This document shows, in pieces, positions 25,073 to 46,960 of a stretch of 64,000 bases of DNA. The DNA comes from Oikopleura dioica (taxonomy: Eukaryota; Animalia; Chordata): positions 3,410,001-3,474,000 of the forward strand of contig OU015566.1 of NCBI GenBank assembly GCA_907165135.1, written 5' to 3'. Made by a program: the position numbers and the translations under genes. The notes under the pieces were generated by a model that saw nothing but the letters and a program-made list of their open reading frames with translations, was not told the origin of the DNA and did no database searches. Numbering within the stretch: position 1 is the stretch's first letter; each line of letters starts with the position of its first letter.

Positions 25073-26168
25073 TTAGTTTAACCCCTATAAGCGAAGCAGT
25101 CTAAAGAACCCCTTAGACGAAGTGTACAATTTTTGTCGATTTGGCCTTCCTCTTGAGATAATCTCCTGAAAATCACAAATTATACATAAACGAACATTTT
25201 CTTTCAAACTACACTTTTAGATTTTCTATACTACGCACTAGAATTTGTTTTTCTTCTATAATTAATTATGTCGAAATTATTAAAAATCTTCATCCAATCT
25301 TTTCAAAGATCCCAGATTCGAATTCTCCATACTTAAAAACCTTTAAATAAGTTAAAAACAATAGCTCAGAGACGCCTAAAAGATAAATAGAATTTTTTGT
25401 TCCTTTGAAGCGCGCAGGTGGAGGTGAGAAAAACGGTGCTCACGCAGTACTCGTGGGTCTTATCAGACTGAAACTTTTTAGGGAGGTGCGTAATGCGTGT
25501 GCAAATACTCATTTAAGTTTTCAGATCGTTCCGATCTACCAGTTCTGTTTGGCAGGCGATAATAACCCAAAATCGACAAAAATTGTACACTTCGTTTATA
25601 GGGGTTAAGCTCAATCTCGGCTCAAGAAAGTCGGATTTTTCGCTCAACAAATTGAGCGATTTTCAGCTCAAATTTAATGAAACTTCAGTCTTAAAATAAC
25701 AGAAACATCAAAACCCTAACCCTAGAACGACGATTTTTGAATAACTTACTTTGTATAATATTTTTCTATCACCGTCAAAATATCCATCTTTTTCGCAACT
25801 CTCTTTCTGTATTCTTCTTTGCTTACGCGATATTTCCGTGAGAATAAAAGTCTGCAAAACTGAAGCTTAAAATTTTCAAGGTGACAAAATATTGATATTG
25901 CGACTGACTGATGAGTAAGCTCCCACACACGTCCGCCGAGCTCGCTTTTGTTTTCAAAACTAATAAATTTGCGTTCAATTTAATGCTTCGAATAATTTTG
26001 TGGAGCAATAAATTTATGTTTATTGCTCTCAGAAGAACTGCTTCCCTGCTCAATCTTCTAATTGTTAAAAAAGAAAAATAAAGGAGCAAAACAGTTTTTC
26101 ACTTATCTGCTTTTGTAAAAATAATTATGCTCAACAAGCTCATATTTTCGAAACACTTGAGTTTCGAG

Positions 26169-26245
26169 TTATTACTGTAATTTTTAATTATCAATCTTTC
26201 GATTTCCAGATAGGTTTTCTCGAAAAACATCATGAGCAGTAATAA
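26169..26245 (-). promoter_or_regulatory. SECIS element in the deiodinase 3'UTR
   Basis: Minus strand: UUAUUACUG pairs with CAGUAAUAA (9-bp helix I); core AUGAU/UGAU; helix II GUUUUUCGA pairs with UCGAAAGAU (9 bp); apical AAAA plus a CC/GG ministem. Lies about 140 nt after the stop. Confidence 0.85.
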
Positions 26246-26384
26246 AAAATGCAGAAAAATTAGGTTGAACCAATTTATGGAAGTGGTTTGATAAATCAGG
26301 GTTTTGATTGGCCGGTTGGCCGAATACAGCAATCTTATTGGTTATCCAAAAATTCACTTCCATAAATTGGTTTCGTCCGAAAAA

Positions 26385-29300
26385 TTAGTTTTCTTTCAAA
26401 ATTTCCTCCAGTTTTCGCACCATTTCGTCCAAATCGTAACCAAACGGTCCAGGTTCACCAACATACTCGACCTTTTTATTTTTAAAATCGCGAGTCTTTC
26501 AGGAAGGGCTGAGAAAAACTGCTCGATTTCGTCGCCGATTGGGTCGGCGAGAATTGTTCCGATCTCGCCGGCTTCTGCTTGGAGGATTTTTGCGGATTGA
26601 ATTCTGTCGGAGTTGGAAGTTGCCTGGGGAAGATTGTAGGAGTTTTGGATTGCCCAGCCGTCGGTGGGGTGAGCTTCGCGGACGTAGATCGTGAGAAAGG
26701 TTACTAAAAAATTAATGATTTGGGAATAAATTATTTGAAAACGAAGATAAGAAAAAGATTACAATGAGTGATCGACGTCGCAATCTTTTTATCTGTCAGG
26801 CGAAAAATTCATATCAGAAACAGTTTGAAATCTTTTATCGAAAAATCAAAATAAACACGCATAAAATCGAGCATTAAATTCGTCGTCAACGGAAACAAAA
26901 GATCAAATCTTCAAAATGAAAATAGAAAATTACAAAAAAATTCTATATATTTTATCAATAGTGGTTCTTCTCTCAGCTATATCATCCATTACAACGCCAG
27001 TTTTCTTGAGAAGACATGATCACGACTTTGATAAGACACTACCAAATATAGAGAAAAACACGACAGGATCTTATGGAACAAAACAATGGACATCAAACTC
27101 TTTTCCGATGGATTCAGAATCAACAACTCCAACAAGCTCGATTTCAAGTTCTTCTACAACCTCGTCAACCTCTTCAACAAGCACGGTTTCGACAACAACA
27201 AAAGGAAAAACAACAACGGTTTCTAATATGAATCCTTGCTTTGGAGTCGACTGTGGGGAAAAAGGCTCTTGTTTTCCGATTGAAGACGAGGCAACATGTT
27301 TTAGCCCTGATGTGAAAATTGGTTTTCTCACTTACGACCTGGGGTCTCTTTTTCAGTCAGATTTAATGATTTTAAAAGGATTAAGGGGGAGGTCGTCAAT
27401 ATCGGGGTTTCTCTTGAGCAAAAAAGCGGAAAAACCTGATTGGATAGAAAAAACTAAAATTGTCAGGGGAAAGAAAAGGGTTGTAAAATTCTATCGGCGC
27501 AAACGAGAAAAAATTTGGCCAGAAAAATCGGTTAGAAATGCCGCCAAAGTAGGGCCATTTCGCGAAAATTCACCAAAAATGATCATTTTTTCACAAATTC
27601 ATCGATTTTACCCCCTAAAACTTATTTTTATATAATAATTTTAGGCTCAACAGACTCGTCAGAATTTGTAGATTCCAAAAATATAATTTTTATATGCACA
27701 CTATATGTAGAAGTGGGATTTTGATAAACCCTGAAAATCCATATTGACGACCCCCCTCTTAAAAATAAAAGTTAAAAATATTTAATAGAATATAAAGATA
27801 TTTTCTGATTGAATTGCATACCCCATAAGAGGACAGAAATGTATGATACTATCGATAACATTTATTTCAAAATTTGATTAAGATGACAGTTGTAAGGTTT
27901 TGGCAAATCCTGCGGCTTGCTTGATAGTTCCCCACTTTACGTATTCTCTAGTGCGGTGAATGAAAGACGAAACTCTGGAAAAGGTGTTGCTCGAGTTTTA
28001 TTTACAAGACGACTGAGATGCACGCGTAGCGCGCAGTAAGATGTGGCCTCAGATAAAATCTCCGGCCTCAGGGTTCGTAAAACCTCACATCCCCCCTAGA
28101 GTTTAGTATGAGGGTACAGTAAGAGAAGAATTGCATCGCAAGTCGGCTTCTGAGAAGTAGTTGGCGGACAGGCGAGACCTTTTCGAAATTGCTCTAGTAG
28201 TTTTGAGTACTGACTGGAGAGCGGCAATTTCTCTTGGGAGTAGATGGCGGCGACGATGTACGAGCAACAACACACTTGAGCGGCGTATCCAAGATTTCCG
28301 TCGGGATCGTGGGAAAGTTCACCGGGGTCGTCGACAGCGGCGGACGCTGATTGGCTGGTCGGTCGAGATTTCCGGCCAATCTGCCCAAATCGGACTTTTC
28401 AAGGGCAGAATTTTCTGCTCGTTCCTGGGAATTCGTTGTCGAGAGAAACGTGGCATTCTGTCCAAGGTAGACTTGAGGTTGATCTGTAGCGGGGTCCGAA
28501 GGATTCTGCGACGAAGTATTTTTCGCGACGGTTGAAGTTGGAGATTCGACGATTGTAGTTTGATGTTCTGTGCTGAGAGAACTATCTTTCTTCGTTTTAC
28601 CAGAGACATCCCCCTTAGACGAAGAAGGCATCGAATCAGCTTTGAAACTAGCAGCTTGGATCTGACCAGTATCAAATGCAGGGGTTTCGGTGAGCACTTT
28701 TTCGGTAGGCTCGACTACCAGTGAAGATTGGGCCTGCGGAATCGAGTTCTGCTCACGGTTTCGTACCTCGCCAGGCACGGAGTGCAACTCTGCGTCTTCC
28801 GGAAATTCGCCAAGTGACTGCGGAGAAGTTGCAGATGCGGCCTTGAGCTCTTTAAGATCAGCTGTGATCGTATTTTGGTGCTCCAAAGGCGCGTGTGTAG
28901 GCAGATCGTGGCCGAGACTTTGCTTCACCGACAAAGTCAGGCTTCCATCGGGTACCTGATGAACCTCGTTTCCACCGTCAGGTTTGGCGATCCCAACCCG
29001 CGAGTTTCGCTTGAGCTGGACCTTCAACGGTGAAAATGACTTGTACCTGCCATCGAAGTTCAGGCGAAGGTAGGTTTTCTCGAATTCGACTGATCGAATT
29101 TCTGGAGATTGGAAGATGTCGCGCCCTAGCAGGCTTGGGCAATCCTCCAGCACGTAGACTTTTGCTTCTAATTCAGGGCCCGCGTCGAAGATCATTTTCA
29201 TCTCCAAATAGCCAAGTGGGCTTTTGGCGGCACCATACAGTCCAGAAATCGTCAATGGAGCTGGTTTCAGCTGCGACAGTAACTTTTCAGGGACTACCTT

Positions 29301-32288
29301 CTTTGGCAGCATAGTGGCGCAGGATCCGGAGTCGATCTCTACGTCGGTGACGAACGAGCAGTTGTCACGTGTGAATTTGATGCTAGCGGTGTAGGGGTCT
29401 GGCACTAGCTTTGGCAAAGATTGGTACACTGGAGCAGCTCGCCAGCACGCAAGGGTAATGGCCGATTCATCCTCGTGTGCATTGTCGGTGGTTGGTTGAG
29501 CTGTGGCTTGCTTGACTTGCTGGTCATTATTACCGGTCTCAGAATCTTTGCTGTTTTGACCACCATTTTTGGTACGGTAAGCCCCTCGTTTACCGTTTTT
29601 AGTTTTGTTGTCGGGCTTCGACTTGTTATCGCGGCGTTTTCCCAAGTAGTAGCAGTTGGCGTCGGTCGGAGTCATATTTCGGCGGAGTGTCTCAGCGACA
29701 GCAGCTAAATCATCTGGTCTGAAACTGTCGGACATTTTGTCGATCAACTTGTTGTAAAGATCTGGCATCTGGAGACGGAGCTTTTCTGACAGGAGATGCG
29801 TACCAAAGAGATAGAAGCAATCTTGGGCGGTCATCTCTTTATCAGGATTTACGCGTTTGAATTCACGTAGACAAGCTTCATACGCCTCGTTTAGCTTTTG
29901 TTGGACCTTTCCGGCATAGTCGTGGAGCGGCAAATCAGCATCGCAGTCGGTAGCAGCAGCTTCAGCGATGATCAAAAGGTGGTTGAGCTTTCCGCCGAAC
30001 TGTCTGTTGATGAGTTTACGGGCGGCTTCGTAGTCTGCACATTTATCAAGAGCATCACCGATGGCGCGAGACGGGGCAACATCCAGATGGGCGCGCAAAC
30101 AGCTGAGAAAGAACTGCTGTTTGTCCATGGCGGGCTTGCCGGTGGCGCGGTCGATGATGTAACTCTTTTGGAAGGAGTCGGCGAGACCGAGGAAGTGATC
30201 AGTTTCTTGTGGGCTGGTACCTTGGAACTTTGAAGTGCCGAAGTGGCGGGTGAATGCCGTGTTGATGACAGAAGCGGAGATGACAGAGCTACCAGCAGTG
30301 GACTGAGCAGCAGGAGCGCCAAGAGGTAACTTTCCAGACATGACGAGAGAAGTGCACTTATCGATGATCGCTTGGTACTCTCCGATCTGGTTTTGACCTC
30401 TTCGTTTTCTCGTAGTGTAGCTGGGAGCTTTTCAAGGGCTTCTTTCTGCGCTCGAGTTGTGCTGGCGAACTCCAGGGCTTCTTTTACAGTTTTGATGCTG
30501 TCCGGGTTGAATGACATTTTCAGCGATGAAGACGGAGATATGCTGGCGAGACGCTGCGAATGGACTGAGTCGACTGGTTATCTGTTGGGTAAGACTTGTA
30601 CCTGGACCGATCCCTTTGACGCTAGATAGTTAAAGTCTAGGTCAAATTATAGGGATGATAGGCGAGCTGAGAGCGACAGGAAATCCCCAAACCAGATTTT
30701 AGGAGGCCAGTGACTGGTGGGTGCGGCGAGGTGAAGAACGAAGTAGCAACAGCAGCGCGGGCCGGACTAGAATGCGCGAGAAATCAGCAGCAAAACGGTT
30801 GTACCTGGCCTGACCCCAGTGAACTCAGATAGAGATCACTTTTAGGGGCTTGCGGAGCGGGAGCTAGTGGCGACGGTTGGGCTGATTCGATCAGCGGGAG
30901 TGCGCGAAAAGTTTTACGCCGTTGGTTCCACAGGAGAAGGATGCGCGGCCTTGGAACGGAAAAGGCGTCTTCCGGGAAGAAATCAGGTTTAGCGTCGACG
31001 AAGAATTGATTGGAGAGCGGTTGATTGTTCGAGGATCCTTGTAGATTTTAGTTTTACCGGTAAGTTGTACTCGAGGAGCCGTCTTGTCTTCGCACAATTA
31101 CGATGACACCACTTGTAAGGTTTTGGCAAATCCTGCGGCTTGCTTGATAGTTCCCCACTTTACGTATTCTCTAGTGCGGTGAATGAAAGACGAAACTCTG
31201 GAAAAGGTGTTGCTCGAGTTTTATTTACAAGACGACTGAGATGCACGCGTAGCGCGCAGTAAGATGTGGCCTCAGATAAAATCTCCGGCCTCAGGGTTCG
31301 TAAAACCTCACACAGTTAAATGCGCAACAAAAACCTCAGTCGATAGAATGCTCGTCAAACATGAGTGCCTTGCTGGAAATTCGGCGATTCCCTGTGAAAC
31401 TGATGGAGTCAAAATTCATCATACATTTCTCGAAGCAACGGAAAGAAAAAACGAGTACTGCATCAATACTCATGTCTCTGAAGATGACCCGCCGATGCGA
31501 GCGATGTACTATAAAGACCTTCCTCTTCATGAAGATCCTAGTCTACTCGGGCTTGTTCTTCAACGACCATTTGGCGCGAATAACCATTATAATTCTGAGT
31601 TTGGGGACACTTGGATTCTCGACAAGCAAGAATGCATGGAAGAAAAATGTCCTTACATTGTGAGAGCGGGAGAACGTCCTCATAAAGGTGATGAAAAACA
31701 AAGAATAATTCTTTAAAATCAGGTTGGAAACGGAATCCGAGTCATTCCCAAATGGAGTCTAGCGACAACTGGCTCTTGTTCGAACAAATCGAAGACGACA
31801 ATGATGACTTTCTTTGGTTCATTGAAACCCAAATCAAAAACTGAATATCAGAAGCTCTTTGATTGAAAAATATATATTTACATTTCCTTGTTGATGAAAA
31901 TCTATTACCTGATGGAAATTTTTTCAAAATTTTCTTGAACTCTTTTATCGAGTCCATAAACGGAGGTCACGTGCACGAGCCAAAGTTGAGGACGGTTATT
32001 TCGCCAAGATACTTTTCAAGTTCCTCTAATCCAGAAGTCTCGATATTGAGAACTTGAAAATTTGGGACTTCTTTTCTGATCGGTAGGGGAATTGTCGAGT
32101 TACGAATTCTCTCCCGGTAGAGTTCCAGGTAGCATTGAATAGGGCTTGAATTTAGTTTGAAAGGGATGAGAAAGGAAGCTCTACCTTTTGCGAAAGAGTC
32201 CAGGAAACTGGCCGGAAATGTCGAGCCAGAAAAGGATCGGAATCCGTAGAATCGTTTGAATGTGAGCCCAAATTATATAGGCCCACAT
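26385..32288 (-). CDS. DIO: Iodothyronine deiodinase, a selenoprotein (~219 aa, 3 exons)
   Basis: Exons 32288-32185, 32144-31909 and 26703-26385. Motifs VLNFGSCT-TGA(31969-31967)-PPF, TFLTIYVREAHPTDGW, ALPERL and GEPGPFGYDL. Hydrophobic N-terminus. One A is missing in the run at 26479-83. Confidence 0.92.
26916..31716 (+). CDS. Gene or genes nested antisense in the deiodinase intron: signal/TM, S/T-rich stalk and EGF-like motif at the 5' end; the 3' exon is split by the LTR element
   Basis: 26916-27298 encodes MKIENYKKILYILSIVVLLSAISS...TTT...NPCFGVDCGEKGSCFPIEDEATC. A 42-bp GT-AG intron at 27841-27882 precedes ATGACAGT, and the frame continues after the LTR as TVKCATK...KQRIIL* (ends 31716). 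Linkage of the two parts is unproven. Confidence 0.5.
27891..31312 (-). mobile_element. Ty3/gypsy-type (Tor-like) LTR retroelement, 3422 bp, non-autonomous (gag-protease only)
   Basis: Two 199-bp TG...CA LTRs (27891-28089 and 31114-31312) that I read as identical. TSD CAGT. PBS TGGTGTCATCG from 31111 and PPT AGGGGGGA at 28097-28090. AATAAA in the LTR on the minus strand. Confidence 0.95.
28194..30517 (-). CDS. gag-pro: Gag plus aspartic protease polyprotein with a disordered C-terminal tail; no RT, RNase H or integrase
   Basis: Protease motif VEIDSGSCATMLP...CPSLLGRDIF. The 30517 ORF (MSFNPDS...ENEEVK) joins the 715-aa ORF (NQIGEYQ...MSGK) if one A is added at 30391-94. No YxDD or HHCC motif. 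Confidence 0.8.
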
Positions 32289-46858: not shown

Positions 46859-46960
46859 CCGTGGAGAAAAGCTGAGTCAGGGTCATGAAAAAGCCTTTCT
46901 GCCGGAAAAAAGCTTTTTCAGGACCCTGACTCAGGTTTTTTCGGCAGGTTTCGACCCCAG
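46859..46960. mobile_element. Miniature copy 3 of the CTGGG...CCCAG MITE family
   Basis: CTGAGTCAGGGTC...GACCCTGACTCAG core, ending CCCAG. Flanks TCCAGCGC and TCCAGGGC match at 7 of 8 positions. Confidence 0.65.

Follow-up and report, generated by a model that had tools for sequence, protein, structure and literature searches.

In the 64,000-nucleotide stretch of the Oikopleura dioica genome analysed here (positions 3,410,001 to 3,474,000 of contig OU015566.1 in assembly GCA_907165135.1, hereafter the window), the minus strand very probably carries a functional gene for a selenocysteine (Sec)-containing protein of the iodothyronine deiodinase family; the genome is of the Okinawa type of this species. 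According to the proposed mechanism, an mRNA would be assembled from three exons, and the ribosome would decode the in-frame UGA at 31969-31967 as Sec, guided by a selenocysteine insertion sequence (SECIS) in the 3′ untranslated region (UTR) at 26180-26243 and drawing on the tRNA-Sec and the selenocysteine-synthesis machinery of the genome. In the predicted product of about 217 residues, the N-terminus would be hydrophobic, and Sec would form part of the motif GSCT-U-PPF in the deiodinase catalytic domain that comes after it. Reductive dehalogenation would be expected of it by family, and activity on thyroid hormones can only be inferred. A preliminary description of this DNA had proposed a selenocysteine deiodinase-family gene with a SECIS in its 3′ UTR, and this proposal was backed by the matches to the Pfam family PF00837 (T4_deiodinase), the TGA-containing active-site motif and the SECIS.

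Structure of the gene

Translation of the window revealed a minus-strand gene of three exons, running from the ATG at 32288 to a TAA stop codon at 26387-26385 (Table 1). The product of exon 1 was a conserved and mainly hydrophobic stretch, considered in relation to the membrane anchor of vertebrate-type DIO1-3, and 26-28 of its 34 residues were identical in the orthologous loci L003, L001 and L015. Exon 2 encoded PPFMDSIKEFKKILKKFPS downstream of the TGA, and the protein specified by exon 3 started with (V)TFLTIYVREAHPTDGW and finished with ...GEPGPFGYDLDEMVRKLEEILKEN. The UGA exon and the AHPxDGW exon had been described as separated by a 5205-bp GT-AG intron (31908-26704), and all these coordinates were correct on re-examination. 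The splice sites of this second intron followed the GT..AG consensus, with a T-rich acceptor tract. Moreover, both of its exon-intron boundaries were spanned by DNA contigs from two read sets of different studies, X1 and X2, and therefore the length of intron 2 is not the result of a misassembly.

Table 1. Coordinates of the deiodinase gene and of the elements found in its second intron and 3′ UTR (positions in the window)
Feature	Position	Strand	Description	Basis
Exon 1	32185..32288	-	ATG at 32288; 34 codons plus 2 nt; mostly hydrophobic N-terminus	Translation
Intron 1	32145..32184	-	40 nt, GT..AG	
Exon 2	31909..32144	-	Active-site motif LNFGSCT-U-PPF	
In-frame TGA (Sec codon)	31967..31969	-	Within LNFGSCT-TGA-PPF; FGSCT-TGA-PPF spans 31984-31958	
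Intron 2	26704..31908	-	5,205 nt, GT..AG, phase 1	
Nested gene B (OKI2018_I69 chr1 g903)	CDS 31348-31687 + 31723-31844	+	Antisense to the deiodinase	
Long terminal repeat (LTR) element	27891..31312	-	3,422 nt; 199-nt LTRs at 27891-28089 and 31114-31312; CAGT target duplication	
Original start codon of nested gene B	27883..27885	+	Separated from the remainder by the LTR insertion	
Foldback repeat	27381..27762		22-nt inverted ends starting/ending TTAA	DNA depth about 1,100-2,600
Open reading frame (ORF) A	26916..27314	+	Signal-peptide-like start, Ser/Thr-rich stretch, Cys-rich end	Unverified ORF
Exon 3	26385..26703	-	EAHPTDGW ... GPGPFGY; ends with TAA at 26387-26385	
A5 run breaking the frame	26479..26483	-	A6 in DNA contigs	
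Miniature inverted-repeat transposable element (MITE)	26264..26379		About 116 nt; 18-bp perfect inverted arms; 8-bp duplication TAATTTTT; between stop and SECIS	
SECIS element	26169..26250	-	Helix 1, AUGA/UGAU core, 9-bp helix 2, AAAA apical loop	Rfam SECIS_1 and fold

Membership of the deiodinase family

The assignment to the deiodinase family was based on PF00837, whose curated cut-off is 27 bits. Exon 3 matched positions 137-208 of this profile with 57.9 bits (E 1.2e-15), and the other frame, entered beyond the frame break described below, matched positions 210-235 (E 0.0079). In a six-frame scan of the whole assembly, exon 2 read across the TGA matched positions 105-134 with 27.1 bits, and exon 3 was recovered with 57.8 bits in a match beginning at position 135. 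The profile positions of both exons adjoin, and thus the proposed splice restores the deiodinase domain without a gap; the same scan revealed no further exon-3-like sequence near the locus or elsewhere in the assembly. The part of exon 2 that precedes the TGA had no significant match of its own in Pfam or the Protein Data Bank (PDB), and the match emerged only when the exon was read across the TGA. This is unsurprising, since deiodinases vary in sequence ahead of the active-site motif. The active site itself had the form G-S-C/A-T-Sec-P-P-F that characterizes the family, with an in-frame UGA at the Sec position.

Comparison with proteins of known structure pointed in the same direction. Exon 3 matched the catalytic domain of mouse Dio3 (PDB 4TR3) with an E value of 5.7e-9, and the window protein shared with mouse Dio3 and Dio2 (4TR3, 9H48) the motifs S-x-T-Sec and Y-x-x-E-A-H-P-S/T-D-G-W and the C-terminal G-P-x-x-Y, as well as a similar spacing between Sec and EAHP (21 versus 22 residues). 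Unlike the mouse enzymes, it had a loop one residue shorter past DGW, and the half of the protein that precedes the motif had no detectable similarity to them. The 32-residue C-terminal piece retrieved from PDB chiefly false positives among designed coiled coils, with Dio2 at an E value of merely 0.24. The residues proposed for proton relay and substrate contact in deiodinases comprise a Ser, a Thr, a Tyr, a Glu, two His and an Arg/Lys clamp (PMC11592359), of which the window protein kept the Ser, Thr, Tyr, Glu and the first His.

SECIS element and selenocysteine decoding machinery

A match to Rfam SECIS_1 was found at 26180-26243 on the minus strand with 22.6 bits, and it was the sole SECIS_1 match on both strands of the window. 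The predicted fold, canonical for a SECIS, was composed of a 9-bp helix 1, an internal loop containing AUGA and UGAU, and a 9-bp helix 2 (z = -2.0), and the apical loop opened with AAAA 11 nt past the AUGA. This element was placed on the correct strand, 142 nt downstream of the stop codon, and it was kept in the orthologues L001 (30.6 bits), L003 and L015. When the MITE located ahead of it was discounted, the SECIS stood at the same distance from the stop codon as in the orthologues.

The genome also encoded the means to use such an element. A tRNA-Sec gene was identified with 72.8 bits and was called SeC(tca) by ARAGORN, a multi-exon SepSecS gene was present, and a single SPS2-Sec gene has been reported for O. 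dioica (PMC4561486). Of the hallmarks of a selenoprotein gene, a SECIS and the machinery for Sec decoding were thus found.

Orthologues, paralogue and purifying selection

An orthologue was found in the Bergen O. dioica genome (GCA_000209535.1, scaffold FN653773.1), with an exon 3 that was 86% identical to that of the window. It shared with the window gene the TGA, both intron positions and the SECIS sequence, and it differed in that its introns were only about 34 and 42 nt long, with nothing nested in them, and its 3′ UTR lacked the MITE, the SECIS being placed about 30 nt past the stop codon. The marine metagenome contigs L015 and L016 had a similar appearance, and in another metagenome contig, L002, the second intron was about 340 nt long. 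An intron at the position of intron 1 was also found in L003, L015 and L016 and was absent from L001. L016 lacked about 20 codons at the end of the coding sequence and the greater part of the SECIS (1230-1250, where the sequence jumps from GATTTGGACGAGAT to TAACTGAGAATAAAC), owing either to a deletion in this allele or to an artefact of assembly.

The preliminary description had anticipated that gene predictors would truncate the gene at the TGA or split it, and this is what the Bergen annotation does: it contains a 94-aa product that stops at the TGA and, starting from the next Met, a 122-aa 'Iodothyronine deiodinase' (P0001). These two separate products would be in line with the alternative that the TGA is a true stop codon, so that the window would encode a 93-residue N-terminal protein and a separate C-terminal protein initiated at the next Met. 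This alternative was considered very improbable. In fact, GSCT-TGA-PPF stays in frame and fits the deiodinase profile across the stop, and the TGA was kept in six loci, the same codon being present in L001, L003, L015 and L016 and in the paralogue L004, with the protein conserved on either side of it. The presence of the SECIS, the tRNA-Sec and SepSecS also argues against termination at this codon, as does hrDx from the ascidian Halocynthia roretzi, likewise a tunicate member of the deiodinase family, which has been characterised as a homologue of the vertebrate deiodinases (Shepherdley et al. 2004, cited in PMC13170672).

The clearest sign that both halves of the gene are joined came from L001, a 923-nt JGI contig from a metagenome and a related lineage. 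This contig was collinear with the orthologues and kept the in-frame TGA, and it lacked both introns, so that the exon with the UGA, the exon after it and the SECIS were united in one intron-less, mRNA-like sequence. On the simplest reading, L001 would derive from a spliced mRNA of that lineage and would constitute the best evidence that the halves are joined. Its first 160 nt or so (1-161) matched the 3′ end of the gene located upstream in the genomic contigs, together with the intergenic region. This stretch suggests a polycistronic transcript, with the deiodinase perhaps occupying a downstream position in an operon of that lineage. The upstream gene of the Bergen-type contigs had no tblastn match in the window.

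Substitution patterns also pointed to a gene maintained by selection. Between the window and the orthologues, synonymous sites were saturated (pS 0.5-0.9) and the nonsynonymous divergence (dN) was 0.13-0.15, and the ratio of nonsynonymous to synonymous divergence (dN/dS) was about 0.09 for the comparison with L001. All five coding pieces were conserved, including those past the TGA and past the frame break.

Moreover, a second Sec-deiodinase was identified in the same genome, at C1:9647661-9648146 on the minus strand. This paralogue had GSCT-TGA-PPF, EAHPTDGW and, a short way downstream, a SECIS-like hairpin (25 bits) with the architecture of that in the window, and it differed from the window gene in having no intron at the exon 2/3 site. 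O. dioica keeps two Sec deiodinases under strong purifying selection.

The frame break in exon 3

In the assembled sequence, the reading frame of exon 3 is broken at a run of five A residues (26479-26483). The DNA contigs had six at this point, since one extra T was found after 26478 on the plus strand at full depth in both X1 (38.6/38.6) and X2 (95.5/95.5), and the A6 run restores the frame, reading ...ERLAILKNKKVEYVGEPGPFGY. A second discrepancy in homopolymer length between the assembly and the DNA contigs was found nearby, in a T-run of the intron at 26705 (26705/26706). Because both read sets carry A6 and a second discrepancy of this type lies close by, the A5 run is an error in the assembled sequence, which is one base short in this homopolymer.

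The preliminary description had raised the concern that a -1 frameshift at 26479-83 might be real and fixed, which would make the locus a pseudogene, and this concern was dispelled by the A6 of the X1 and X2 contigs. That the one-base deletion is genuine and the gene is decaying, as the frame break in the window sequence by itself would suggest, was judged highly unlikely: the extra base was present at full depth in both sets, the discrepancy at 26705 was an error of the same type in the same assembly, the protein beyond the break was 81-88% identical to the orthologues, and the PF00837 match carried on in the second frame. Another candidate explanation, a programmed -1 ribosomal frameshift, was suggested by the coincidence of the break with a heptamer of the X XXY YYZ type, U UUA AAA (26486-26480), on which a one-base backward slip would yield the conserved protein. 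This mechanism was rejected, and its probability is close to nil, as the DNA contigs from both read sets contain the extra A, so that no frameshift is required, and the orthologues have no frame break. The occurrence of two homopolymer discrepancies within about 6 kb makes it likely that other genes in this assembly are broken by false frameshifts.

Weighing of the contrary evidence

Several observations weigh against a functional deiodinase gene, or against thyroid hormones as its substrate. The score of the SECIS, 22.6 bits, was below the Rfam gathering score of 35. At the level of transcription, confirmation of the junction 31909^26703 by RNA-seq, as the preliminary description had advised, was not obtained in RNA of this lineage: in two oligo-dT RNA-seq runs bearing the same species label (X11 and X12), no reads were found on the exons of the deiodinase or of the nested gene within 26125-32114, and the only reads that mapped at all were a few partial ones related to transposable elements (TEs), at 30725-30924. 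O. dioica comprises several divergent cryptic lineages, and consequently a null result from runs that may stem from another lineage or stage says little about expression of the gene.

The lack of reads on the exons in both runs could also be taken to mean that this haplotype is crippled, i.e., that the exons are intact and splicing or expression is blocked by the 5.2 kb of intron 2 and by the antisense gene and LTR element within it, so that the halves are not joined. In favor of this explanation, intron 2 is more than 100 times longer than its Bergen counterpart, and the LTR element and the MITE were inserted recently and are polymorphic. It was nevertheless regarded as unlikely, given that both splice sites conform to the GT..AG consensus and the acceptor has a T-rich tract, that no alternative exon-3-like sequence exists nearby or elsewhere in the assembly, and that correction of the assembly error leaves an intact coding sequence. 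In addition, the RNA runs, in which just TE-related reads mapped, may represent another cryptic lineage or stage. A functional gene, spliced across the long intron, was therefore preferred.

With respect to the substrate, the residues that characterize vertebrate-type DIO1-3 were not all found. According to the alignment, the position of Dio3 His219 (Dio2 His182) was occupied by Ala and that of Dio3 Arg275 (Dio2 Lys241) by Pro, and the same Ala and Pro were present in the Bergen-type orthologues. The loss of both positions implies that iodothyronines may not be the substrate. Moreover, a thyroid hormone receptor has been reported as absent from O. dioica (PMC7540406); a candidate receptor of this species is listed in PMC8699336. 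The thyroid-hormone-type iodine metabolism that the preliminary description had inferred for a larvacean went beyond the present evidence, and action of the enzyme on thyroid hormones is putative. The paralogue at C1 retained a Lys at the Arg/Lys clamp in the alignment, which the window gene had lost, and inspection by eye placed a His one residue off the position of Dio3 His219, to which it may correspond.

Sec-dependent reductive dehalogenation is the chemistry of the deiodinase family. The ascidian hrDx is a selenoprotein with a SECIS and has measurable deiodinase activity; no larvacean enzyme is known to have such activity, and O. dioica is not known to undergo metamorphosis. It is conceivable, though doubtful, that the copy in the window acts as a Sec-dependent dehalogenase or reductase on another substrate, such as iodotyrosines or halogenated phenols, or serves in iodide salvage for the endostyle, a reading suggested by the loss of two residues whose mammalian counterparts make contact with iodothyronines or protonate them.

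Elements nested in intron 2 and the 3′ UTR

The nested gene B was located near the 5′ end of intron 2, with its end 64 nt from the donor site of the deiodinase, and its product (P0006) was 100% identical to Oidioi.mRNA.OKI2018_I69.chr1.g903, which identifies the window as DNA of an Okinawa-type O. dioica. The occurrence of an antisense gene within the intron had thus been correctly recognized in the preliminary description; the nesting differed in detail from that account, since the LTR element was found to interrupt the coding exon of that gene just past its original start codon. In fact, one X1 contig joins 27885 to 31312, revealing an empty site and the absence of the LTR element from one X1 allele. 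This empty allele reads ATG ACA GTT AAA TGC (M-T-V-K-C), and the paralogue of gene B at C1 starts with MTVKCATKK, which indicates that the element was inserted into the third codon of g903 and not into an intron. The annotated model of g903 begins at the next Met after the severed start codon. At the end of the LTR (31264-31312), an ATG was observed that shares the reading frame of the remainder of gene B, and it could substitute for the start codon that was severed. Accordingly, the three levels of nesting originally described do exist in the haplotype of the window, and they are specific to it, given the empty LTR allele of X1.

The LTR element itself had near-identical LTRs and a minus-strand ORF of gag-protease type, without reverse transcriptase. 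A related element in C3 carried an ORF of about 1,750 aa, both ends of which were matched by the ORF of the window element, which fits an internal deletion.

At least six further loci in the genome (e.g., L010 1495-2037 and L011 1486-1959) were members of the same family as gene B, which had no Pfam domain; a protein-atlas search gave a weak lead towards a beta-trefoil (ricin-B-like) fold. One of its paralogues presented a signal peptide and a Ser/Thr-rich region. A search for contigs encoding P0006 gave no match.

ORF A was found as a single copy in the genome, with no real paralogue, and searches retrieved no homologue or annotated protein in the size range covered (73-233 aa) and no Pfam match. 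The long ORF opening at 26916 extends into the foldback repeat at 27381-27762, which is taken as a high-copy element on account of its read depth. A single gene composed of ORF A and gene B was considered and is unlikely, as gene B shares its start codon with the C1 paralogue and has an in-frame stop ahead of it.

The MITE of the 3′ UTR represented a family of elements of about 116-120 nt, with at least 45 near-full-length copies of 82-90% identity across the assembly. Its read depth was very high, and one X1 contig, corresponding to one allele, lacked this copy. Neither this insertion nor that of the LTR element touches the coding sequence of the deiodinase or its SECIS.

One X2 contig apparently joins 26868 to 31904, possibly with intervening letters, and is reported only as a lead. 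Such a join would drop a block of 5,035 bp (26869-31903) comprising ORF A, the foldback repeat, the LTR element and gene B, leaving an intron of 170 nt. Elsewhere in the window, a hairpin at 46865-46941 matched Rfam mir-1296 with 42.2 bits (E 7e-5), well under the gathering score of this family, and it is probably an inverted repeat rather than a member of mir-1296.

Implications for tunicate deiodinases

Deiodinases of O. dioica are already present in UniProt, and eight of them have been retrieved and discussed in a survey of thyroid-hormone genes (PMC8699336). In that study, the O. dioica deiodinase, like most tunicate ones, was reported to miss nearly half of the protein at its N-terminus, the catalytic FGS motif was reported as absent, and it was suggested that these enzymes 'may possess different catalytic sites'. 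According to the present analysis, this absence is an artefact of annotation caused by truncation at the UGA, since the N-terminal half and the Sec site were found upstream of the in-frame UGA. As the enzyme family had already been recorded in this species, though solely through models truncated at the UGA, the finding is a sound correction of annotation and not a new kind of system. A selenoprotein-aware re-annotation of tunicate genomes would fix such conclusions.

The locus is also a case of a real gene broken by the homopolymer errors of this assembly, and its second intron illustrates how far lineages of O. dioica can differ: it measures 34-42 nt in Atlantic-type relatives (42 nt in Bergen) and 5.2 kb here, genes and mobile elements included. 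If the enzyme does act on a substrate other than iodothyronines, the chemistry of deiodinases would be uncoupled from nuclear thyroid-hormone signalling in a chordate. These results sharpen the question of which role a Sec-deiodinase plays in an animal reported to be without a thyroid hormone receptor.

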